From Rebecca billardiae RCC1528 (lineage: Eukaryota; Protista; Haptophyta): a stretch of 64,000 nt of DNA. Under the pieces are notes generated by a model that saw only the letters and a list, made by a program, of their open reading frames with translations, had not been told where the DNA came from and ran no database searches. The stretch lies in the NCBI GenBank assembly GCA_965240325.2, contig OZ251228.1:1550001-1614000 (forward strand). Direction: 5' to 3'. The position numbers were made by a program, and so were the translations under genes. Of the stretch, positions 931 to 43,390 are shown piece by piece (within the stretch, counting starts at the first letter, position 1; every line of letters begins with the position of its first letter).

Positions 931-1853
931 CGTGGTGGCTTCGAGCGCGCGCGGAGCGGCAAACGCGCGCGAAGCAAGGGCCGCGAAGGAGGTATATCGA
1001 TCGTCTGTATGGATAAGTAAAGGGCGGTCATTTCACTATTATAAACTGTCAGGCAGCCGCCATCGTGCGACGACGTGCCACGGCCCCGTGCGCGAATTTG
1101 TGCGACGGCGGCAGCGACGAGGTCGCGGTCCCCGGCCGCTCCGACGCGCTCTTTACATCCGCGTGGGCCGTGCGGGTGTAAAGAACCCATCCTACTCGTC
1201 GACAGTGCCGACCTCGCCGCTAGCGGCGTCGCACAAATTTGATGATTGGTACCTCGGGCATGGCCCGTGGCCCGCACGCTAGGTCCGCGCGGCGCTCTGT
1301 GGGCAAGCGAGCCAAGGGGCGCAGCGAGTCCGGTGCGGCTGTCGTACGGGTCCATCGCGAGCGCCGAGTCGCAGCCGCGCGCGCGCCGCGCCGCTGGCGC
1401 CGGGTCGCCCGGGGGAGAAGGCGCAGCTGCAGTGCTCCTCCGCCACCACGCGATCCGCCGGCAGAAAGACCTGCTGACTTTGCGCCCGCCAGTTTTGACC
1501 AAAACGATGATGTTTTTTTAATTATCGGCGGGTGTGCTTGTGTGGACGCCTCTAATTAATCTTCTACTGTCGCCTGCCTGAGCTGTGTGCGTCTCTTAAT
1601 TCTTAGTAAACTGTATCTACAATAGCTATGTGCCGTACCCGGATGAAACCAGATCTAACGAATCCGGCGGTGCGGGCGGCGCTATTTTAGTATTTTCGTC
1701 GGATCTGCTGCTATTCATCAACGGAACGTCCAATAATAATAATAGAGCCGGCGAGAGTGGGAGCTGCGCATCCGGACTCACAGAACGCCAACTTGCTGGC
1801 AACGTTGGCACCGAGCCTTGCCTACCTCGGCCGCGGGCTGGGGGCGTGGCGCC

Positions 1854-4210
1854 ATGGCGGGTGCTGGCTCGCGGGGCCGCTCACCGCCCAAGCAGGGCGG
1901 CTCGCCGCTGCACATGGCGCTGGCCGTGCCCGATATACCCCTGCCGCCCCTCGGCTCCCCCTCGCTCGGACGCCAGATGCGCGTGACGCGAGCGCCCGAG
2001 TGGCCGCCCGACGATGACGAGTACCGGCGCCCCTCGGAGATGACCATCGAGCGCGTGCAGGCGCAGCTGTCGGAGGCGCGGCGCATGGGGCGTCTCCACC
2101 GGCTCCGATCGGCCTTGCCGCCCATCCTGCTCGGCATCGGCTTCGCCGCCGCGGCCTTCACCCTGTACGTCTCGACGCCGCCGCGCTCGGTCGAGTGGTT
2201 CTGCGGCGTGTTCGCCTGGATGTTCGTGCCGCCGCTGCTGCTGATGCTGCTGCCGCCGACGGAGGCGCACGTGGTCGAGTTCACCTCGCTTTTCGCCGTC
2301 GTCTTCCTCGTCGGCAGCGCCTCCGTGAACCTCGGCTGGGCCGCCGCCATCGGCGCGCAGAGCGTGCGCGCGCGCTCATGCTGGGCGGTGCAGCACGTGC
2401 GCGCCATCGTGCTGCCGCTCGTGCTCGTGGCGACGGTGGGGCTGGTCACGGCGGTGGCGGTGTTCGTCGCGCTGGTGCGCCGGCGCATGCGCGCCCTCGA
2501 CCTGCGCGCGCTCGTCGAGCGCCTCTGGCTCGCGATGGGCACGCAGTACGTCGCGCACTGCGCTCTGTCGTTCTACATCGGCCTGGCGAACGCGCTGATC
2601 GCCCCGCCGCAGTACTGGATGCCGTTCCTGCCGCACGTCCTCGGCGCGATCGTGATCTTCGCGCTGGGCGCGCTGTTCTGCCTCCACCCCTTCGTGCGCA
2701 CGCGCGCGCACGCCTGGCTCGCCTCGCGCGGGGAGGGTGTCTCGGCCGCGGCGGGCATCGCCGCGCTGCTAGGCAGCGCGCAGCCCGAGTCAGCCGTCGC
2801 GATGGCGCGCGAGCGGCTGCGCTCGATCGACGCGTCGAAGCTGACGCGGGACATCTTCGTGGCGAACGAGCGCGGGGACAACCGCTGGTTCGACCGCTCG
2901 AGCCGCGCCGAGCTCGAGGAGATCGACGCCTTCGTCTCGCACAGCTGGCATGACAACCCGGGGCATAAGTGGCACGCCCTGCAGCGCTGGCGCGAGGGCT
3001 TTGTCGCCGTGCACATGCGCGAGCCGAAGATCTGGCTGGACCGCGCGTGCATCGACCAGCAGAACATCCAGACGGACCTGCAGCACCTGCCCATCTTCCT
3101 CGCGGGCTGCCGCTCGCTGCTCATCCTCGCCGGGCCCACCTACTTCGAGAGGCTGTGGTGCATCATCGAGCTGTTTGTCTTCGACCAGATGCATCCGCAG
3201 CCGTACGACCCTTCGAGCCCGCTCACGATCGCCCGGCTCTCGCAGAGCCCGGCGAAGCGGCTGTCGAGCGTGGCGCCGGCGGCGCGGGACGGGGCCGACC
3301 CGCGCGCGCGGCTGCAGCGCGCCGTGGGCTCGCTCGGCTCGCTCAAGGGCATCCCGCTGGTGGGCGGCGGCGAGGGCGCGGCAGCGGGCGGCGCGGCGCT
3401 GTCGCAGCCGGCGCACGCGCGCGTCGACCCCGCGCTCGCGACCGGCTCGGGCTCGCGCGACGCCTCGCGTCGGCAGAGCGTCGGCTTCGCCGAGGCTGGC
3501 GCGGGCGGGCACGGCGCGTCCGCTCTGCCCAAGGTGCCCTCGCTCAAGGGCACGTGGTCCTTCGTGAAGCACCTCTCGCTCCGGCGGATGTCGGCAGAGG
3601 CGCGCGTCGCGCCCGAGCCCGGGACTGACGACGACGACGCCGAGCTGGGCGATGGCGACGGCGAGGACCCGGTCACCGCGTTCGACCCGAGCGCGCTGCA
3701 CGCGCAGGCGTCGGCGTCGCGCCTCTCGTTCGTCTCGACCAGCTCCGCCGGCCGCGGCGCGCGGCCCAGCTTCCCGCTCGGCGCGCTGAACGTGATGGCA
3801 CCGGGAGACAAAGTCGAGATGCGACTGCTGCCGGGGGTAGCGGAGGACGCGCACGCCAGCTTCGACTCGACGCGGTGCAAGTGCGCGCTCAAGGCGGACT
3901 TCGACCGGCTGCGCACGTGCATCGAGGCGGCGAGCGGCTCGTTCGAGAACTTCAACGAGCGCGCGCGCGAGCTCCTCGACGAGGCGACCAAGCACCTGCC
4001 GTACGCGGCACCACAGAACACCTCCTTCTCGTCGCAGCGCACGCCCAACTCCGGGCGCACGCCCAACGCCAGCTTCTCGGCGCACACGCCGCAGTCGGCG
4101 GCGACGCCGACGCTCTCGCGCTCCGCGTCCGCGCGCGACGCGACCGCTCGCGACGCGAGCGCGCTCCTCAGCCCGCCGCTGCTCGGGCGCGCGCTGAGCC
4201 AGCTCGGACT

Positions 4211-4250
<40 letters not shown>

Positions 4251-5063
4251 CACAGCGGCGCGGGGAGCCGTGACGGCAGCAGCAGCCCGCACGCGTCTTC
4301 CAGCAACGCGCTCACGCCGACGGCTGACCAGTCGCTCGGCGAGGGCGCGCGCGCGGAGCGCATGTCTGGGCAGACGACCAGCTCGGTGACCCCCAGGACG
4401 AGCGAGTACAGCATCGCCACCGCGACGCCGCGCGCGAACGAGCGACACGCGCGGAGACGCAAGGCGACGCGCGCGGCGCCCTGGCTCTGCCTGGCACTCC
4501 TGTACTGCTGCGCGTGCGCCGTGGCGGCGTGGTGGGCGTCCGAGCCCGGCGCCGCGGACTGCCGCGCGTGCGCCGCGCTCGTGGAGCAGCTGCCCGCCTC
4601 TGCCGACGGCAACTGGCTGGGTGCGCCCGGCGGTCGGCAGTACGCGCGCGCGAGCGGCTCGAGCCCGCTCGGCTGGGCGGAGGCGCGCGCGAGCTGCGCA
4701 GCGCAAGGCGCGCAGCTCGTCAGCGTCGCGGACGCGGCGGAGGACCGGCTGCTGCACTGCATCGCCACGCGCGAGACGCCCGACCTCTGGCTCGGCCTCA
4801 CGCAGAGGCGAGGCGCGAGGCGCGCGCGTGACGGCTGGGAGTGGCAGGACTCATCACTCCCGCCGCCCGCCACGCGCGCGGCGGCCAAGGACGGCGCGCG
4901 CACCGGCGGCGGCGGCGGGTATGCCAACTGGGCCGAAGGCGAGCCCTCGGCGCTCGACGGCAGCGGCGAGCCCCGGTGTGCGGCGCACACGCCGTACGGC
5001 TGGGTGGCTGCGTCGTGCGACACGTTCCCGATGCTCTTCGTCTGCGAGCGCTCGGCTCCATGA
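1854..5063 (+). CDS. Multi-pass membrane protein: ~6 TM helices, TIR-like domain, low-complexity linker, TM helix, C-type lectin domain
   Basis: Uninterrupted ORF (ATG 1854 or 1914). TIR-like motifs DAFVSHSW (~2925), WLDRACIDQ and [12 protein letters not shown] (~3141-3173). RRRK followed by a hydrophobic helix (~4450-4535). CTLD motifs [34 protein letters not shown]...C...FVCE. Confidence 0.8.
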
Positions 5064-5786: not shown

Positions 5787-7539
5787 TTATGAAACCTCCA
5801 TTGGCACAGGGGCACCCGCGTCGGCCGCGCCAGCAGCCACCGCGCCCGCTGACTCCGTCGGCTTCGACCCGGGCTGCGCCCCCGCCTCGCCGGGCTGCGC
5901 GGCGTGAAGCTCGGCGTAGAACTTCATCGACAAGTCGAAGTACTGGTTGGGGTGCGTGATGCCGCCCATCTCCGTCTCCGTGAGCGCGGAGCCCGCGTGC
6001 CGAGCCTCGAAGTAGAGACTGCGCGCGGCGTGCACGCGTGCGGCGGGCGGAGGGCGGTGTGTGCGGCGCGGCGCGCAATCGATCAGCGCCACGCCCGCGC
6101 CCGCCACGCTGCCTCCGCCGCCGCCGCCGCCGCCGGAGCGCGCACCCGCAGGCGACCTGGTAGTGGTGCTCAGTCGCCTTGAGGACGATGCGCGACACGT
6201 CGGCCGGCTTGACAGAGTGGCGCGAGAGCATCGCGCGCAGCTGCTCGGCCGAGTGCGTGCGGAAGGGGCAGCCGTGGAACTCGCCCTGGTTGGGGGAGAA
6301 GGAGATCACCTTGGCGCAGCTATACGGCGTGTAGTTCTTCTTCTGGCCCTGCGCGGCCCCGCGCGCGCGCCGGCGCGCGACCGGCGCTCGCGCGCGCGCT
6401 CAGCACTCGGCGCACACGCGTGCAGCGCGCGCGCGGCGCGCGCGCGCGTGCACCTCGAGGCCGTAGTTGTACCGGATGTTGTACCGGTGCTCCTTGTCGA
6501 ACTTGTCGGCGGGCATCGCCTTGGTGAAGAGCGAGCGCCAGAACTGCAGCGACTCCTCGTACGACAGCCCGATACCCTTAAGGAACAGGCCGAGCTGGAT
6601 CCTCCCCTGGTGCTTGAGGTGCGAAGCCTCCTGCAGCTTCGCGTTCAGGTGGGACATGCACAGCGGGTACGAGCGCTTGGCGAGGGTGGGCAGCTGCGCG
6701 AGGCTGACCTCGTGCGCCGCGCCCTTCTTGTCCGCCGCGTACTCGTCCACCATGTACTGCGTCGAGCAGTGCTCGAGGAAGGCGGTCAGCCGGTCCGCCT
6801 CCGCTTCCTTGAGTGCGGGCCACGCGCGCGACGCCTCGACGAGCGCGCGCGAGAGCCGCGCGCGGAACTGGCCGCCCACGATGGAGATCAGGTCGGAGTG
6901 GGGCACGTACGCCCAGCCGGCGCGCAGGAACACGCGCCTGCCGCGCACCAGGTCGAGCACCTCCTCGAAGGGCACCTTGTAGTGGTCCTCGAGCCGGGGC
7001 AGCGCCGCGGCGCCGTCCTTCCGCCGCGCGGCGTGCTTCATCTTGTGCAGCTGCGGCTCGATCTCGGCGAGCTCGACGGCGCTGATGGGCTCGTACCCCA
7101 GCCCGTTCTCGCGCAGGAAGCGCGCCACGTTCGTCTCCGTCGCGAAGCGGTGCTTGAACAGCTCGTGCTCGTTCGCGAGGAAGTAGCGCCGCAGCTCCTC
7201 CGAGCGGCAGAAGGCGAGGCGCAGCATGAAGTGGGCGCACTGGTCGCGCACGAGCTCCTCCTCGGACCACCCCGACGCCGCTCCGGAGAGCGTTGTGAGC
7301 GGCTGGCGCACGATGTCGCGCTCGGCGCTCGCGATCGCCTTGGTGAGCGCCTCACCCTTTGTGCCCTTCGCCTTCGCGTGGTCGATGCACCGCAGCAGGC
7401 GGAGGCGGGCGTAGCAGCACTCCTCGACCTCACTCATGGAGAGCTCGGCCTCGGGAGGCTGCGCGTACATCGACAGCCCCGATCGCTTCGGCCCGTCGCC
7501 GAGCGACGCGCGCGAGCGCTTCGCCGGCAGCAGCTCCAT
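5787..7539 (-). CDS. PRIM2: DNA primase large subunit (3 exons; introns 6349-6453 and 6019-6145)
   Basis: Motifs HFMLRLAFC, YPLCM, HLKHQGRIQLGLFLKGIGL, YNIRYNYGLE|GQKKNYTPYSC, HGCPF, HYQVAC and HPNQYF. The GT-AG introns restore the frame. Confidence 0.96.
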
Positions 7540-7697
7540 CGCCGCGCTCGTCGAGCCCTGGTGCCCACCCGTCACTCTTGCCTCAAGGTGCTGACCAACG
7601 GTATGGCAAGCGAAAGTCCTGAGCATTGAGCAACCCTTCGGGCGGCTGTGCCGCGCCCGGACTCGCCCGACACAGCACAGACTCGACTACCATCACG

Positions 7698-23343: not shown

Positions 23344-25803
23344 TCACGGGCCGTTGTCGAGGAGCGGTGCGCGGCCCTGCGCCGACATCGTGCTGCCGCC
23401 GCCAGCGCCGCCACACCGCGCGCGCGCTTCCCCCGCACCCGCCCGCCCGTTGCCCGCCGCGGCGCTGCCGCCGCCCGGCGGCGGCTCGGTGGCATCGACC
23501 CAACGCTCCGAGGCGCGCGTCCCGTCGGCCGCCGAGCCTGGCGCGCGGGCCTCCGGATCAGCAGTGTCGTCTTCGTCCGCCTCGAGCGCGTCCTCAGACC
23601 ACATGCGCCCGAGCTCGCCGCGGCTCACGCCGACGAGGACGACGGGGAGCAGCGTGCACGGCACGAGGTAGAGCAGCGCGGGCTGGCCGCGTACGCCGTT
23701 GAACGTCAGGCCGATCAGGTTGGCGAGCAGCGCGAGCATCAGCCCGACCGCGTACCCCACCGACACGATGGCATAGTACCAGGGCGCGCACCGGCCCGCG
23801 CGCGCCGCCGCGTCGGCGCGCTCGGCGTCTGCGCGCTTGGCGCGGCCGAAGCACATGCCGCACGCGCCCCGCGGCGGGCCACGCGTGAGCAGGTCGTAGC
23901 GCAGCGCGAAGCAGACCAGCAGTCCGGGCATCACCACGTCGCCCAGCCCGAGCATCGAGTAGCCGCCGCCAAAGTCGAAGCGCGGCAGCATGAAGAGAAC
24001 GGGCATGCGCTCGCCCTCAATGTGAGCACACGTGCGGCCGTCGGCGGAGAGCTTGGCGCGCGCGTTGCCCGCGGCGCCCGCCGTGGCCACCTCGACCATC
24101 ACCGACTTGCGGAAGATCAGCGGCGAGATGAACACCATGAAGATGTCGTACACGAAGAAGACGCACAGCAGCACCGCGGCGACGCGCACGCTCGGCAGCC
24201 GCACGGTCTTGAGAAAGAGCGCGCACATCGAGAGAGCCATCAAGTCCTGCAGCGCCCACGCGTACGGCGCGTGGCGGCAGACGTAGTACCACACGACGAG
24301 GCCCGCCGCGATGGCGAAGGCGATCACGTCGGCGGCGGTGATCGTGCCGAACGTCTCCGTGTGCACCAGCGCCGCGCGGCGGAAGAGCCTGCGCGCGCGC
24401 GGCGCGCGGCGACGCGCGAGGGCGGCGGCGCGCGCGCGCCGTGAGCGCGACGCCGCGCGCCGCGCCGTGGTACTGGCGGCGGCGCGGGCGGGAGGGGCGC
24501 GCACACCTGGGGTTGAGCCTGTGCACGAGCGGGAAGCTGCCAAACTGGAAGATCGCGGAAATGCACCCCAGGCAGAAAAAGATCTGGATCACGCGGATCA
24601 CCCAAAAGGCTCCGAGCTGCGCGCGGCGCGGCGCGGCGGCGCGGCGCGGCGCGCGGCGGTGCGCATGAGCCGTGGCGGTAGGCGCGTCAGCCGCCATGCG
24701 CTGGCGTGGACATGCAAGGGTGCGCACGCGGCTGGCGCGGCGAGGGGCGAGCGCACCTGCAGCAGCACGAACATGACCACGAGTGAGATCGACGCGACCA
24801 CGACGAAGCCGAGCGCGTGCGTCGCCGTCAGGTCGAGCGTCTCTTCGTCTGCGCCGCCGTCCGCGGCCGGGGCGCGCGCATCCTCTCCCCAGCCCGCAGC
24901 CTTGCGCTCGGCCGGTGAGGGCAGCTCGGCGAGCGCGCGCTCTTTCGAGGTGGCGAGCCACGACGCGGCGACGACGGCAAAGACGCCCAGCGCCCAGATC
25001 AGCACCACCGACGGATCGATCGCCATCCGCCTGCGCTCGGACGCGCGCACGCGCTCGCGGCGAGAGGCCGCTGCGCGGAGCACGTGCGCGTCCGCCCGCC
25101 TCACGTACACGGCGGGGATCATGCCGGCCATGTCGATCTGCTCGCCGAGGTTCATCACCATCGGCTCGTCGAGCAGGCAGCACACGGTGAGCGCCTGCCC
25201 CGCCGTCACCGCATCCGACGGGAGCAGGCCGGCCACAGCGCACTCCCCTGAGGGGCACGTGCCGCCACCGCCGCACTGCTGCGCGAAACCGCCGAGCCGT
25301 TGCGCGGTGGCCGCGGGCGATGCCGGGTCGCCGGCTGCATGCACCTCGTGCGAGGCACGCGCGCAGTCGAGAGAGCATGGATCCGTCAGCGCGTACGAGC
25401 TGCTCACGTTCGTGTACGCCGCGCCCAGCGTGCTGTACACGCCGACCAGCGATGCGCCGGCGCGAATGGCCGCCGCGACCTTGTCGCCAAAGTTGCAGCC
25501 GCCACGCTCGGCGATGACGGCGAAAGGCGGCGCGTCGGGAGCACTGAGCTCGAGGGGCAACTCCAGCTCGCCACATGCGTCCGCAGGCACGGCATCGACG
25601 AGGAGGAGCTCGACCTCGCCAGCGCCGTCAGCGACGGTTGGGAGGGAGACGAGATTCGCGCGCGTCGCGAGCACCTCGTCGACGCCGTCGGGAGCGTTCG
25701 GTATGCGAATGATGAAGTCGGCGACAGCTGCTTGCGCCCGCGCCCTGGCCACGCCGCCGGCGAAGGCGACGAGCGCCAGCGCGAGCCGCTGCGACCAGCG
25801 CAT
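23344..25803 (-). CDS. SPPL2: Signal peptide peptidase-like 2 (PA domain plus GxGD aspartyl protease; introns 24617-24756 and 24389-24506)
   Basis: Signal peptide; PA motif [10 protein letters not shown]; catalytic [10 protein letters not shown] and [10 protein letters not shown]; [10 protein letters not shown]. Confidence 0.93.
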
Positions 25804-29635: not shown

Positions 29636-30963
29636 TCACACCATCTTTGTGTTGGCCCCCTTCTTTGCGGCGGGCTTGGTGCCGCTGGCCCCCTTCTGCG
29701 TGCCCTCCGCGTATGGCTGATACTCTCTCCGGTTCGGGCCGCAAGGGTCGGCAATGCCCGCGCCCGGAGCGGGCATGATGGCGTGCATGGTGAAGCGCAC
29801 GACTGCAGCGACCCAGCTGTGCGGGCAGGGGCGGGGCGGCCGCGTGCGTCAGAGCGCGGCCGGTTGGGCGAGCGCGCGCGCCCGCGCCGCGGGAGGCGCG
29901 AGCCCGCACCAGACGCAGTATGCCAAGAAACCCGGCCCCGAGATGTAGCCCGTGCCAATATCTGCCTCGGCGAGCATCTTGGAGGTGCACTTGGCCGAGA
30001 AGGTGAGGAGCGCCATGCCGAGCGTGAAGATGCCAATCATGTCGGGGAACGTGCCGATGATCTTCTGGAAGTTGGTGTCCGCGCGCTTGCGGATGCGCGT
30101 CAGGCAGCCGATCAGCGCAAAGATCAGCGTGACCGCCGTGATCAGCGCGCCGAACTGATTCGCACTCGCCTGCATCGCGCAGTACTCGAGCGCGTCACAC
30201 GGGTACCCAAACGTGTCGGCGTCGTGCCGCGCGGAGGGCGCGCCGTGGCAGCCGGCGGTGACGTCTGACCACCAGTGCGCCTCGAAGTGGCAGCCGTCCC
30301 ACTCGTACCAGTCATCCCCTTCGAGCGCGTCCGAGCAGTGCACCATCACCAGCCGCGTGAGCCCGACGTAGGCGATCCTCCCCTGGCCGTGGCGCCGCAG
30401 GAAGCCGATGGCCCACGCGGTCTTCTTCACGACCTCGGGGTGCGAGGAGAGCGAGAGGCTGCCGTAGCCCGTGACGATGATCGAGACGACGGTGAAGGCG
30501 AGTGCCGTTCCCATCAAGGCCTTGCGCTCGCGGTCGGCGGCGTGGAAGCCGCAGTTGCCGATCTTCTCGACGTACTCGTTGTCGTTGAGGTACTTGTTCT
30601 TGCGCCCAAACACCCACGAGAGGATGGGAAAGGGCGGGACTGCGGACGCAGGTGGGCAGGCGTCGCATGGCGCAAGGGATGGCACGATCGATCAGACCTC
30701 CGGCGTACACGGCCGCGCGCCTTGGTCGCGCAGCCCGGCGTCGCGTGCATGGCGCGCGCACCGCCCTCGTCCTGCCAGAACGCCGGGCAGCATGCCTCCT
30801 CGTCTGGGCAGCCGCATCGCTCGCAACCGTCGCCTTCGTTGGGCAGATCTTCGACGGAGCGGACGCCAGTGCGCTCGGCGGGGACGACTGCGCTCTCTGG
30901 CGCGGCGGCCTCTGCCGCCGGCGCTGCCTCGATCGGCTTGGGCCTCGCACCACAGTTCCCCAT
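29636..30963 (-). CDS. Four-TM claudin/PMP22-like membrane protein with MGNC acylation-type N-terminus (introns 30640-30761 and 29817-29909)
   Basis: Spliced ORF with TM1, a W...YVGL...C loop, TM2, TM3, then GPGF-TM4. Confidence 0.65.
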
Positions 30964-34632: not shown

Positions 34633-34834
34633 CGCCCGCCGCCAACGACCTGCACGCGCGGCGGTCGTCCGCGCTTCGGCAGCGGCCAAGCGGCAAGCGG
34701 GTAGTACCAAGCACCTGGGTAAAATCGCGCGCGGCGCGGCGGCGGCCATCGTGCTCGCGCGTCGATTTCACGCACTCTGACCGAGCACGAGGCCGCTCGA
34801 CGTCGGCCGGAAGCTTCGTCATTAGACGACGACG

Positions 34835-35295
34835 ATGGGCTCCGCACGCATGCCGCTCGTCGCGTGGAGCATGGCGCTCGCGGTGGTCGTCGGCGCGGTG
34901 TGCTCATCGGCGCATACGCACGTGCGCTCGGCCGCATGCCCCTCGCGGACCACGCTGACGCCGCGCGCGCGGCTCGCGACGACGGCCCCTGCTGAGCCGC
35001 CCCGCGCTCGTAGCGCGCTCGTCTCTCGCATGCTGTGCACGATGTCGTCCGACGTGGACGTGGGCACGCAGCGTGACGGCCCCTCGTCGTCCACGGAGGA
35101 CGGCAGGAGCCCAAACAGGGAGAACTCCGACGGCAGGAGGAGCCCGCGCAGCGGTGGTGGCGGCGGTGGCAACTATGCCGGCCGCGGCGGCCAGCAGCGT
35201 GGTCAGCGCCGCCCGCCGCCAGGCGGCAACCGGCGACCGCAGGAGGCCGCCATCGAGCTGAAAGAGCCCATGGTCTTCGTGCACCGCAGTGAGCT

Positions 35296-35332
<37 letters not shown>

Positions 35333-37876
35333 GGGCGCGGCGATGGGCGCGGTCAGCGCCCGCAGCAGGACCGCGGCGGCGGCGGCGGTGGCAGGCCGGG
35401 CGCCCGCACCGACGGCCGGAGCGGGGGCGGCGTGGGCACCGCGAGCGCAGGCGGCGCCGATCGCTCGCCGTCCGCCCCGCGCGCCGATCCGCCGGGCGGG
35501 CGCGACGTGCCCCCGAGCAAGCGCTTCGCCAACAACGCGCCGCGCGGCGCCGCAAAGGGCAAGAAGGACTGGGCCTCAGAGAAGCGCAAGGAGCCCAACC
35601 AGAAGCGGCTGCTCAAGTCGAAGCTCTCGTCCGCCGACGCGATGGACGGCGACGTCAAGTTCAAGGGGCGGCGCAAGGGCAAGTCCGGCGGCGGCGGCGC
35701 GGGGCGCGTCCCCGTCAAGCCCAAGCTCACCGAGGTCACGATCCCGGAGGTGATCACGGTGGGTGACCTGGCGACCACGCTCGAGTCAAACGCTGCCGCT
35801 GTGATCAAGGACCTGATGAAGATGGGCGTGCTCGCCTCGGTCTCGCAGCCGATCACGGGCGACCAGGCCGCGGCGGTGGCGGAGGGGATGGGCCTCACGG
35901 TCAACCGCGGCACCGACGTCGAGGCCGAGACCCGCGCCCTCGAGGTGGACGAGGACTCTGCGGAGGAGCTGGAGGAGCGCCCGCCGATCGTGACGGTGAT
36001 GGGCCACGTCGACCACGGCAAGACCTCGCTGCTCGACGCGCTGCGCTCGACCCGCGTGACGGCGGGCGAGGCCGGCGGGATCACGCAGCACCTCGGCTCG
36101 TACCAGCTCACCACCGACGACGGCAAGCTCGTCACCTTCCTCGACACCCCCGGCCACGCCGCCTTCTCGGCTATGCGCTCGCGCGGCGCCAACGTGACCG
36201 ACATTGTGATCCTTGTGGTGGCGGCGGACGACGGCGTCAAGCAGCAGACGGTCGAGGCGATCAAGTGCGCGCGGCGCGGCGTGCGCGGCGCGGCGTGCGC
36301 GGCGCGGCGTGCGAGGCGGCGGGCGCCGGCCGGAGCCGACGAGCGCGGGCCGTGCCCGCGGCCGGCTCCCCGCGCGAGCCGGCGGCTCACGCGCCGCCGC
36401 GCGCCCCGGTGCATCCGCGCACGCACGACCCCCGCCCGCGCCTCTGCCTCGCGGCGCGCAGGGCGGCCAAGGCGGCCGGTTGCCCGATCATCGTCGCCAT
36501 CAACAAGGTGGACAAGGAAGGGGCCAACCCGGAGAAAGTCGGTGCGTGCGGGCCGCGGGGTCGGCGAGGCGCTCGAGCCGGCGCGCGCGCGCGCGTGCCC
36601 CGGGGCAGGCATGATGACCCAGTCGCCGCGCGCTCGCTGCCGCGCCCGCCTCCGCGCAGGCCTCGAGCTGCTGGAGCACGACGTGGTCCTCGAGCAGTTC
36701 GGCGGCGAGATCATGTCCTCCGAGGTCTCCGCGCTGCAGGGCCAGGGCCTCGACGGGCTGCTCGAGAAGATTGGCCTGCTCGCTGAGCTGCTCGAGCTGC
36801 GCTCCAACCCGAAGCGACCGGGCGAGGGCGTGGCGGTCGAGGCGCGGATGGAGCGTGGCGTCGGGCCGGTGGCGACGACGATCGTGCAGCGGGGCACGCT
36901 GCACGTGGGCGACATCGTCGTGGCCGGCTCGACGTGGGGGCGCGTGCGCAAGCTCGTCGTCAACGGCGACGAGGTCGAGGCGGCGCCGCCCGGCTGCCCG
37001 GTTGACGTGCTCGGGCTGCAGGGCGTGCCCAACGCGGGCGACAGCTTGCGCGTCGCAGACTCTGAGCAGCTCGCGCGGCAGATCGCCGACGTGCGCGCGC
37101 AGCGCGACCGCGAGCAGCGCGCGGCGGTGCTCTTCTCCGCGCAGGCCGACACGGCGCAGAAGGAGCTCTTCGGCGAGCTCCAGCGCGACTACAAGGCCTC
37201 GTCCATCGACGTGGTCATCAAGGCGGACGTCCAGGGCTCGGCCGAGGCGCTCCAGTCGGCGATCGAGGGGCTGGCGCAGACGGACTCGTTCGGCTACTCG
37301 GCGACGTGCCGCGTGCTGCGCGCCGGCGCGGGCGAGCTGACGCTGGAGGACATCCAGCTCGCGTCGGTCTCGGACGCCCTCGTCGTCGCGTTCAACACGC
37401 AGCCCTCCGCCGCGACCCTCGCCGAGGCGGAGCGGCTCGGCATCACCATCGTGAAGCACTCGATCGTGTACGACGCGCTCGACGACGTGAGCGCGCGCCT
37501 CTCCGACCTGGTCGCGCCGCCCGCGTCCAAGTGGCTGGGCACGGTGACCGGCCGCGCGGACGTGATGCAGACCTTCAAGATCGGCAAGGGCATCGGCATG
37601 GTCGCGGGCTGCAAGGTCACCGAGGGCAAGATGCAGCGCGGCTCCAACCTGCGCGTGATCCGCGGCAAGCAGGTGATGCACGAGGGCAAGATCAACCAGC
37701 TGCGCTATCTCAAGGACATCGTCGAGGTGGTGGACGAGGGCTCGGAGTGCGGCATCTCCTTCGACACGTTCGACGGCGTCAAGGAGGGCGACGTCGTCGA
37801 GTGCTACGTCGGCGGCGGCGGCGGTGGCGACGACGACGACGACGACAGCCCGGCGAGCGGCAGTGACGACGAGTAG
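34835..37876 (+). CDS. infB: Organellar (likely plastid) translation initiation factor IF-2 (introns 36265-36461 and 36542-36659)
   Basis: Motifs [34 protein letters not shown], spliced AINKVD, KADVQGS and GSECGI; signal-peptide-like leader. Confidence 0.96.
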
Positions 37877-41506: not shown

Positions 41507-43390
41507 ATGGATCTTTGGGACGATCTGCGCGACGCGACGCAGCAGGACGAGCGCGGCTGCGGCTGGCTGGCGCCGAGTGCGCCACCGAGCTCACCCGCGC
41601 CGCCGCCGAGACGCTGGCCAGCACCGACCCCGCCGCCGCCGGGCACGCCCGCCGCGCCGCCGCCGAGGCTCGTGATGCACGTGGATGCGGATCGCTTCTT
41701 CCTCGCCGTGCACGAGCGCGAGGATCCGACGCTGCGCGACCAGCCCGCGGCCTTGTGGCAGTACAACCACGTCGTGTGCGCCTCGCACGACGCGCGCGCG
41801 CTCGGTGTCACCAAGCGCATGGGGCCCGAGGCCGCGGACAAGCTCCTGCGGCCGGCCGGGGGCCGGCTGCTGCACGCTTACTCGCGGCAGTGGCCGGGGC
41901 CGCGCGTGTGCTACGCGCGGTACAACGCGGCGTCGCGCGAGCTCTTTGCGGCACTGCGCGCCGCCATGGACGAGTACGCGCCCGGCTCGGTGCTGGAGCG
42001 CGCGTCGATTGACGAAGCGTACGTCGAGCTGACCGACGCTGCGCTCGGCGGCGCGGACGGCGCGGGGCGCGCCGCGGCCGCGGAGGCAGCCGCCGCCGCG
42101 ATCGCCCGGCGTATCCGCGAGCGCGCGCGGCTGCCTGTGAGCGTGGGCCTCGCGCGCACCAAGGCGCTCGCCAAGCTCGCCTCGTCCGCCGTCAAGCCCT
42201 CCGCCCAGACGCCGTCGGAGCGCGCGGCCGTGCGTGCGGTGTGGACGGGTGCGGAGGAGGAGGTGCTGCTGCAACAGTCGGCGCCGACCAAGCTGCCGCC
42301 GCTGAGCGGGCGCGGCGAGTCGCTGGCTGCGCTCGGGGTGCGCACGGCGCTCGAGCTGCGGACGCGCTGGCCGAGCGCGCGCGCGCTCGGCGCGGCGCTC
42401 GGCCTCTCGCCCGACGCCGCCGAGCTGCTCTGGCGCCGCGTGCACGGCTCAGACGAGCAGCCGGTGCGAGAGGTGCGGCCGCAGTCTGTGAGCGTCACCT
42501 CGTGGTCCGGGCACTGCACGCTCGGGGCGCTGGTGCGCCGCGCGGCGGACGGCGACGCGTGCGGCGGCGACGGCGAGGGCGCGGTGTGCGTGGGCACCGG
42601 GCGCTGGCGCTTCGTGGGCCACTCGCACGCGCACGCGCACCGCCAGCGTGGCGCGCACGAGCTGCACCTCTTGGCGGCCACCCCTGGCCTCAGTGGGAGC
42701 GCGCTCGATCGGTGCAAGTGGATCGTGCTCGCGCTCAGCGCCGACCTGGCGGAGCGCGTGGCGGACGACGCGCGCGCGCACGCGCGGCTGCCCACCAAGC
42801 TGGCCGTGGGCGTGCATGGGCCAGGCACGCGGCTCGAGCCGGGCCCAGGCTACACAGACGGTCACACGCGCTCACGCACGTGCGCGTTCCCTCGCGCGCC
42901 GTTCGCCCTCGCGGCAGCCGGTGTCGCTGACGTGCCCGAGCTCGCAGCGGATGGGCCCTCTCTGCTGGACGACGCGGTGCGCGGGCCGCGCATCGGCGCG
43001 CTGGTCGACGCGGTGTGCCGCGTGCTCGAGCAGTGGGCACGCGCTGAACCTGCGAAGCGCGCCGCGCAGCTCACCCTGACAGCCTCGAGCTTCTGCGCAG
43101 TCGAGAGGCCTCGCGCACACCCTGCGGCCGTCGCTTCCCCACGCGCCGAGCTGGCGGCGCGCAGCCAGACGCCGACAGCCGCAGGTGACCTGGGCAGGCC
43201 CATCACGGGACGGGTCTCATCTGCGCCCGCCGAGCAGAGGGATGGCGGGCTAGGATCGGCAGAGGCCGTTCGGCGCCCCCCGCCAGCCGCCGCCTTGTTG
43301 AAGAAAGGGAATGCCGTCCGGCCCACGCCCACTGCCAAGCGGCAGCGCTGCATCTCGGACTTCTTCATCCATCATCATCAGTCTCAGTGA
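41507..43390 (+). CDS. Y-family translesion DNA polymerase (eta/iota-like)
   Basis: Motifs HVDADRFF, QYN..VCASHDARALGV, SIDEAY and SVGLARTKALAKLAS; C-terminal PIP box QRCISDFF. Confidence 0.88.
   Translation: MDLWDDLRDATQQDERGCGWLAPSAPPSSPAPPPRRWPAPTPPPPGTPAAPPPRLVMHVDADRFFLAVHEREDPTLRDQPAALWQYNHVVCASHDARALGVTKRMGPEAADKLLRPAGGRLLHAYSRQWPGPRVCYARYNAASRELFAALRAAMDEYAPGSVLERASIDEAYVELTDAALGGADGAGRAAAAEAAAAAIARRIRERARLPVSVGLARTKALAKLASSAVKPSAQTPSERAAVRAVWTGAEEEVLLQQSAPTKLPPLSGRGESLAALGVRTALELRTRWPSARALGAALGLSPDAAELLWRRVHGSDEQPVREVRPQSVSVTSWSGHCTLGALVRRAADGDACGGDGEGAVCVGTGRWRFVGHSHAHAHRQRGAHELHLLAATPGLSGSALDRCKWIVLALSADLAERVADDARAHARLPTKLAVGVHGPGTRLEPGPGYTDGHTRSRTCAFPRAPFALAAAGVADVPELAADGPSLLDDAVRGPRIGALVDAVCRVLEQWARAEPAKRAAQLTLTASSFCAVERPRAHPAAVASPRAELAARSQTPTAAGDLGRPITGRVSSAPAEQRDGGLGSAEAVRRPPPAAALLKKGNAVRPTPTAKRQRCISDFFIHHHQSQ

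Follow-up and report, generated by a model that had tools for sequence, protein, structure and literature searches.

We analysed a stretch of 64,000 nucleotides (the window) from contig OZ251228.1 of the haptophyte alga Rebecca billardiae RCC1528 (GCA_965240325.2, positions 1,550,001 to 1,614,000), with attention to a long open reading frame (ORF) on its forward strand. The ORF runs from 1818 to 5063, with an ATG at 1854, 1069 codons and a TGA stop. Its predicted product joins six transmembrane (TM) helices, a domain that appears to be a divergent member of the TIR fold, a seventh TM helix and a C-terminal C-type lectin-like domain (CTLD). An earlier note, made from the letters alone, had proposed a lectin-gated TIR receptor encoded in one ORF; the frame, the helices, the motifs and the lectin domain that it listed were all verified in place. 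The features are collected in Table 1.

Table 1. The 6TM-TIR-TM-CTLD gene, its parts and its annotated neighbours (nucleotides are positions in the window).
Feature	Residues	Nucleotides	Strand	Evidence
Complete single-exon coding sequence		1854-5063	+	Stop-free frame; GC3; homolog collinearity
N-terminal tail, basic, predicted cytosolic	1-85	1854-2108	+	14 Lys + Arg before TM1
Six-helix transmembrane bundle	86-278	2109-2687	+	Hydropathy; AlphaFold2 model
Juxtamembrane helices with conserved AAAGIA motif	279-322	2688-2819	+	Model; alignments
TIR-fold core, strands A to D	323-459	2820-3230	+	Foldseek; VIA-align; TIR_2 in relatives
Glu439, at position of catalytic Glu of TIR NADases	439	3168-3170	+	Alignments
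Disordered Ala/Gly/Ser-rich insertion, about 196 residues	460-655	3231-3818	+	Alignments; pLDDT <50; GC3 0.95
C-terminal block of TIR-fold domain	656-714	3819-3995	+	Pattern F..C....D...L..IE..G...FN
Ser/Ala/Gly/Thr-rich linker	715-866	3996-4451	+	Composition; GC3 0.94
RRRK basic cluster, then seventh TM helix	867-870, 874-896	4452-4541	+	Hydropathy
C-type lectin-like domain, predicted extracellular	897-1069	4542-5060	+	Pfam; PDB sequence matches
DNA primase large subunit		6403-7686	-	Pfam E 2e-52
Signal peptide peptidase		23347-24588	-	Pfam E 4.5e-63
IF-2-type translation GTPase		34826-37873	+	High-GC3 ORF

The region has a G+C content of 72-79%, at which long chance ORFs are common. One might therefore suspect a high-G+C artefact, or two genes read as one, a 6TM-TIR gene followed by a separate TM-lectin gene starting at about Met837 (nt 4362). 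Such a suspicion gains from the facts that both low-complexity linkers lack homologs and that the evidence for the transcript structure of the locus is indirect. The G+C content at third codon positions (GC3) tells otherwise. Over the whole coding sequence it is 0.90-1.00 in nearly all 50-codon windows, the first of which has 0.86, and it stays at 0.94-0.95 across both low-complexity blocks (residues 460-655 and 715-866), which no homolog has, compared with about 0.55-0.6 in both flanks, below the value of the forward frame. GC3 that is high throughout and low in the flanks points to one uninterrupted coding exon. In-frame introns at the two blocks were considered and rejected on the same values. 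We also rejected the idea that this is the same gene as Diacronema lutheri KFE25_010547, with the blocks annotated there as introns; the identity is only 39%.

Homologs were found for the forward frame only (E 1e-63), and they are collinear with the window protein over its full length. The long ORFs of the opposite strand (655 and 797 aa) have no Pfam match. No stop occurs between the domains or anywhere before 5063, the fused architecture recurs collinearly in eight other proteins, one of them encoded by a single-exon gene and another by a spliced mRNA, and the fusion is monophyletic. Given the absence of a stop, the coding GC3, the recurrent fusion and the spliced mRNA, a separate lectin gene from Met837 is, as judged from these sequence features, very unlikely; the artefact or two-gene explanation, to which we attach next to no credence, is already largely refuted. 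The reading frame thus describes one intron-less nuclear gene, and the single gene favoured earlier over two stands.

Two further antisense ORFs within 1781-3139 of the reverse strand, of 264 and 188 aa, have GC3 values of 0.92-0.97 and no family match. Their GC3 is high because their third codon positions are shared with those of the forward-strand gene. Such ORFs are a trap for ORF-based annotation of this genome.

Hydropathy gives five strong N-terminal TM segments (residues 88-106, 115-133, 140-158, 190-208 and 259-277) and a weaker one at about residues 225-248 that is aligned to TM5 of homologs; three of the homologs (P0001-P0003, described below) have six N-terminal TM helices each. Two AlphaFold2 models were calculated, one of residues 283-714 from a 9-sequence alignment (model 1) and one of residues 60-460 from 120 relatives (model 2). 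The modelled membrane part consists of six long helices, with a predicted local distance difference test score (pLDDT) of about 90, and then three short juxtamembrane helices. The six or so helices, and the RRRK cluster and helix downstream, that had been noticed from the sequence are thus borne out, with one of the six weaker than the rest. Within the juxtamembrane AAAGIA motif A299, A300 and A303 do not vary within the 9-sequence alignment and are at least 90% conserved among sets of 88 and 120 relatives.

The distribution of lysine and arginine is asymmetric. In addition to the basic N-terminal tail there are six such residues in the TM4-TM5 loop and an RTR sequence after TM6, and the alternate loops hold one, three and none. 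An Arg-rich cluster lies upstream of TM7 in most of the CTLD-bearing relatives that were aligned. This pattern is consistent with the positive-inside rule for a topology in which the N-terminus is inside, the TIR-fold domain is predicted to be cytosolic and the Cys-rich CTLD is outside. The placing of TIR and lectin on opposite sides of the membrane in the earlier note agrees with this prediction. Homologs begin about 40 residues upstream of TM1, and the real start codon of the window gene could be a later in-frame Met.

The six-helix bundle has no convincing relative among solved folds, the Foldseek rows being weak and GPCR-like (resembling G-protein-coupled receptors). Matches to GLIC in the PDB search with the full profile were not accepted; they are compositionally biased, with a per-domain E of about 0.4. 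A motif L-A-x-L-P-x-D-x(4)-R is conserved family-wide between TM2 and TM3 (window residues about 131-142; alignments A3 and A4), and the only PDB sequence match there, the M2-M3 region of GLIC, looks compositional.

The middle domain had been described as TIR-like, and a Foldseek comparison of the region at about 2900-3200 had been proposed as a check. That comparison places TIR domains on top. Nearly all matches in the PDB are TIR domains, with probabilities of 0.98-1.0, and include RUN1, RPP1, SNC1, L6, RPS4, ThsB, AbTir, SARM1, MyD88 and SPARTA. The top four chains in VIA-align, run against 48,161 representative chains, are the TIR domains of SARM1 (Z 8.6), IL-18Rbeta (8.4), RPP1 (8.2) and MyD88 (8.2); between 113 and 136 residues are aligned to the top TIRs, and nucleoside deoxyribosyltransferases rank below them. 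The pLDDT of the core is 80-97 over both models. Model 2 has a mean pLDDT of 90 and a predicted template modelling score (pTM) of 0.79. In model 1 the conserved parts reach 80-96, an insertion of about 200 residues is disordered, and the C-terminal block (pLDDT about 84) packs against the core, with F670, C677, D682 and F700 invariant in the 9-sequence alignment. The two models, Foldseek and VIA-align agree on a flavodoxin-like alternating beta/alpha fold of the TIR type.

At the level of sequence the domain is marked by a ten-residue SHSW block (residues 358-367), WLDRAC (394-399) and RLWCIIEL (433-440). Profiles of the family compared with PDB sequences rank the TIR domains of TLR15/TLR2 and SIGIRR first, at E values of 0.2-0.4 that are not significant; in these alignments box 1 falls onto FDAFISYSEHD and RLWC..E onto WC..EL. 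Among 88 relatives the Pfam matches at E<=1 are to HET (39), TIR_2 (35), TIR (5) and ThsB_TIR (3). At E<=0.01 there are TIR_2 matches in 11 of the 88, the best at 6.6e-6, and HET matches in none. The structure matches are to TIR, and by sequence the family falls between the TIR_2 and HET profiles; we therefore class the middle domain as a divergent TIR-fold type that is also HET-like. The TIR label holds for the fold; by sequence the domain is not canonical and has no Pfam TIR match.

The likeness to the fungal HET domain (PF06985) allows a different reading of the whole protein. It might be a HET-like executor of cell death or of an allorecognition type, set off by way of its membrane parts. 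The six-helix bundle would be the effector, for example by permeabilising the membrane, and recognition would fall to a polymorphic CTLD. Weak HET matches in 39 of the 88 relatives, and one at the WLDRACIDQ block of the window protein, favour it, as does the variation of the recognition site within the CTLD-bearing subfamily (EPS, NPS, QPD or EPN). Three short blocks with similar spacing are common to the family and to what we take to be the HET motifs, a lead only. HET is considered to be distantly related to TIR; it suffices for cell death but is without demonstrated enzymatic activity (PMC10197012). However, no HET match is better than E 0.01, neither the window domain nor any relative reaches the gathering score of 22.5 bits, and TIR_2 reaches 6.6e-6. 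The family is membrane-embedded and algal, whereas HET occurs in soluble fungal NOD-like receptors or allorecognition proteins. From the sequences we consider this executor quite improbable.

Glu439 lies in the helix after strand C, with Trp435 four residues before it. The earlier note had singled out this glutamate, in RLWCIIEL, and its exact position proved to be correct. The residue is invariant in three sets of 88, 120 and 81 relatives (about 30% identity over the 6TM+TIR region), together with F360, H363, W365, W394, D396, P413, G427, R433 and W435; D367 shows no exception in the sets of 88 and 81 sequences and is almost invariant in the set of 120. In the profile alignments, whose E values are not significant, Glu439 lines up with the Glu of WC..EL in the TLR15/TLR2 TIR. 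The family therefore holds a conserved catalytic-type Glu where the enzymatic TIR domains have theirs.

A conserved Glu is an accepted indicator of TIR NADase activity, algal and TLR TIRs included, and TLR TIRs, as well as a clade of algal TIRs with haptophytes among its members, have been reported to produce cyclic ADP-ribose in a Glu-dependent manner (10.64898/2026.04.20.719644). By analogy the window protein may have a Glu439-dependent NADase activity.

A disordered insertion interrupts the TIR fold between strand D and the C-terminal block and is seen in the window protein only, with no relative having it in the comparison (alignments A1 and A2). As its GC3 is 0.95, it is coding and translated and not an intron. 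The long Ser/Gly/Ala linker between the TIR-fold domain and TM7 that had been noticed from the sequence is also present. It contains a perfect in-frame (CGG)13 microsatellite at 4211-4250, read as a poly-Gly run, the length of which is likely to vary between strains.

The CTLD scores 38.1-42.2 bits against Lectin_C (PF00059; cutoff 22.6) over residues 939-1066. Its PDB sequence matches include PLA2R, DEC-205, the mannose receptor family and DC-SIGN, and it aligns end to end with the carbohydrate-recognition domain of DC-SIGN at an E of about 4e-6. The Cys framework is present, and conserved Cys and Trp positions recur across the subfamily. The complete C-type lectin domain claimed earlier is thus complete in fold, but this is not the situation for its sugar site. 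EPS, at 4941-4949 (residues 1030-1032), stands in place of EPN, as had been noticed, and WVA, at 5001-5009, in place of WND. The downstream Glu is kept, so that only two Glu ligands remain in the alignment to MBP-C and CD23. The combination of EPN or QPD with WND and Glu that makes a Ca2+-dependent carbohydrate site is absent from the window CTLD, and the proposal of glycan gating is weakened accordingly.

Within the subfamily the first motif is EPS, NPS, QPD or EPN and the second WVA, WYV, WHD or WFG, never WND. The sugar-specificity motif differs in nearly every member that has the long loop (alignment A6, which holds the CTLDs of nine subfamily members), and most of the long-loop region is absent from the branch of P0001-P0003 and P0077. 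What is conserved is the CTLD scaffold, together with the TM helix and a juxtamembrane ADC..C pair. The variable site and the deleted loop suggest either diversifying selection on the binding site or relaxed constraint. On these residues the best description is a C-type lectin-like domain; a mannose/glucose-type lectin is not supported.

These observations are relevant to a second alternative, in which the TIR fold would be a non-enzymatic homotypic assembly or scaffold and the CTLD would serve adhesion, to the cell's own scales or cell covering, to gametes or to other cells, and not pathogen sensing. A scaffold role is the classical assumption for the TIRs of animal TLR and IL-1R proteins. 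The sugar site is not canonical and half of the subfamily has lost the long loop, which suggests protein ligands or ligands of another kind; the window domain diverges from those TIR enzymes that have been characterised, has no significant match in Pfam or among PDB sequences, and has a fold interrupted by a large insertion. Invariance of Glu439 and W435 in 120 relatives at about 30% identity fits an active site better, however, than a surface interface, and Glu-dependent catalysis has been reported even in TLR TIRs (10.64898/2026.04.20.719644). We judge the scaffold and adhesion alternative unlikely.

A word-indexed search with residues 60-470 returned eight relatives, among which P0001, P0002 (Pavlovales sp. 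CCMP2436 T492DRAFT_914248) and P0003 are collinear with the window protein and end in Lectin_C. The best 150 representatives of the family contributed further CTLD-bearing members, namely P0031 (CCMP2436 T492DRAFT_1125318), P0077 (D. lutheri KFE25_010547), P0136, P0071 and P0018. P0077 comes from a single-exon gene of 789 codons and is collinear with the window protein at 39% identity. The contig that encodes P0003 (L005) matches the CCMP2436 locus L001 in four blocks, skipping three gaps of about 117-151 nt, which indicates a spliced mRNA over the whole 6TM-TIR-TM-CTLD ORF. The search of haptophytes for this architecture that the earlier note had recommended therefore finds it in both D. lutheri and Pavlovales sp. 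CCMP2436. The CTLD-bearing relatives of named origin belong to the Pavlovales and have been deposited in GenBank as hypothetical proteins. No paralog of the gene lies within the 64-kb window.

The family as a whole is much larger. At E<=0.001 an exhaustive search with a profile of the domain gave 6,079 clusters (50% identity), of which 1,256 reach E<=1e-30. Most members have 300-600 residues, with the domain placed after a membrane part of about 200-300 residues. The window protein has the family's six-helix bundle, AAAGIA, the SHSW, W.D..C and RLWC..E motifs and the C-terminal F..C....D block. Haptophyta is the commonest source of the nearest ESM Atlas structure clusters, in one of which, with 116 members, Lectin_C occurs in 22%.

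A FastTree tree of the 6TM+TIR part only, with many long branches, places the eight CTLD-bearing sequences in one split with 98% Shimodaira-Hasegawa-like support; none of 500 label shuffles was equally clustered. A single split of this kind is consistent with a single fusion, and it would fit an origin of the small Pavlovales-type subfamily by one addition of TM and CTLD to the C-terminus of a 6TM-TIR protein.

Two other homologs vary the plan. P0009 (1110 aa, a metagenome protein from the European Nucleotide Archive), the best-scoring member, has two tandem units of membrane bundle and TIR fold. P0008 (859 aa) begins with a signal-peptide-like segment and a Cys-rich region, both N-terminal to the membrane bundle, and may represent an alternative solution within the family, with an N-terminal ectodomain; the only weak TIR and TIR_2 Pfam matches among the first eight homologs are in P0008.

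The closest published counterparts, as far as described architecture allows a comparison, are the membrane TIR proteins of the haptophyte Gephyrocapsa huxleyi. These have several N-terminal TM helices, or an extracellular region and a TM helix, followed by an intracellular TIR with a catalytic-type Glu; the multi-TM genes are expressed early in virus infection, the products are proposed to be receptor-like signal producers, and they are reported without additional known domains (PMC12489294, New Phytol 2025). The window protein differs by the addition of TM7 and an extracellular CTLD, which leaves the TIR between two membrane anchors. Our literature searches did not find such an extension of 6TM-TIR proteins. 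The architecture had been thought undescribed in algae. For the lectin fusion our literature searches agree with that view, but multi-TM haptophyte TIRs have been published (PMC12489294) and homologs have been deposited; the 6TM-TIR kind is already known in outline, and the lectin fusion is the added feature.

In TLR and IL-1R proteins a membrane span joins an extracellular recognition domain to a cytosolic TIR, and ligand activates these proteins by bringing their TIRs together. The window protein is like them in pairing an external recognition domain with a predicted cytosolic TIR, and the best PDB sequence match of the family is the TLR15/TLR2 TIR, although the similarity is not significant (E about 0.2). 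It differs in having neither a leucine-rich repeat (LRR) nor an immunoglobulin ectodomain, in an ectodomain that is C-terminal and a TIR that is internal, and in seven TM helices against one. The TLR order of N-terminal LRR, single TM and C-terminal TIR is not found, and Pfam detects no LRR. The TLR-like receptor of the earlier note is thus acceptable as an analogy and not as a statement about domain order or membrane anchoring.

With the enzymatic TIRs (SARM1, plant TNL and TIR-only proteins such as RUN1, RPP1 and RPS4, and the bacterial ThsB and AbTir) the domain shares the Glu in the helix after strand C and the aromatic residue four positions before. Unlike them it lacks NB-ARC, ARM/SAM or SLOG partners, and it has SHSW at box 1, a HET-like W.D..CI.Q block and, in the window protein, the 196-residue insertion ahead of the last strand and helix. 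The CTLD has the fold, the long-loop region and the Cys framework of animal C-type lectin receptors (DC-SIGN, the mannose receptor family, CD23 and MBP). In contrast to these, it carries the EPS/WVA site and is coupled to a TIR and not to motifs of the ITAM (immunoreceptor tyrosine-based activation motif) or hemITAM type. DC-SIGN, CD23 and other myeloid C-type lectin receptors are type II proteins, whereas the window CTLD is type I-like relative to TM7, with its C-terminus outside.

Taken together, the gene appears to encode a seven-TM surface sensor that signals through cytosolic TIR domains clustered by ligand. We give this overall picture a probability of roughly 0.6 and hold its enzymatic step with less confidence. 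In such a sensor the protein would sit at the cell surface, where a multivalent external ligand would bind or cross-link the CTLDs; the ligand need not be a sugar at the classical Ca2+ site. Cross-linking would bring the tethered TIR domains together, and their oligomerisation would turn on Glu439-dependent NAD+ cleavage, the production of a signal nucleotide, or TIR-TIR scaffolding. The ligand, the activation by clustering and an immune role of the window protein are here extrapolated from the architecture.

A number of points weigh against this picture. The E values of the Foldseek matches are only about 0.03-0.07, and a Z of about 8 is at the border of significance stated for VIA-align. The window protein has no Pfam TIR match even when the isolated domain is searched at E<=10, a search in which HET gives 12 bits (E 0.27) over 19 residues at WLDRACIDQ, and the family weakly matches HET about as often as TIR_2. 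The register of Glu439 with the catalytic Glu of the plant or SARM1 enzymes comes from sequence alignment. The 196-residue disordered insertion within the modelled TIR fold could affect TIR assembly. Three of the five canonical ligands of Ca2+ site 2 and sugar are replaced in the window CTLD, and relatives either vary at this site or have lost it. The topology is a prediction from hydropathy and charge counts, which are simple rules, and transcription and the start codon of the locus are likewise predicted.

A bolder version of the sensor can be put forward as speculation that we think will probably turn out wrong. It would be an algal pattern-recognition receptor of reverse topology, in which a fast-evolving CTLD captures a viral, bacterial or prey ligand, the clustered TIRs act as NADase or cyclase, and the product or the loss of NAD+ affects either downstream effectors or the conserved six-helix bundle of the protein itself. 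If this were true, marine phytoplankton would possess a major unrecognised innate-immune signalling system, made up of the 6TM-TIR family with its more than 6,000 clusters.

Innate immunity in bacteria, plants and animals alike makes use of TIR domains. For marine microalgae the description of what these domains do is at its beginning, with one transcriptome study of 2025 in G. huxleyi. Our interest in the locus stems from a large, mostly haptophyte family that joins a six-helix bundle to a TIR fold with an invariant catalytic-type Glu, in which one lineage, the Pavlovales-type algae, gained an external CTLD. The result is a candidate receptor with recognition and TIR signalling in one polypeptide and a domain order unlike that of TLRs. 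It provides a concrete construct with which to learn what algal TIRs sense and whether they have enzymatic activity, questions that bear on the dynamics of hosts and viruses in phytoplankton. As a reservation, the binding-site residues do not support the expected lectin chemistry.

Elsewhere in the window, the high-GC3 ORFs at 29852-30691 and 41914-42849, both on the reverse strand, have no Pfam match. The primase, peptidase and GTPase genes of Table 1 represent an ordinary nuclear housekeeping context.

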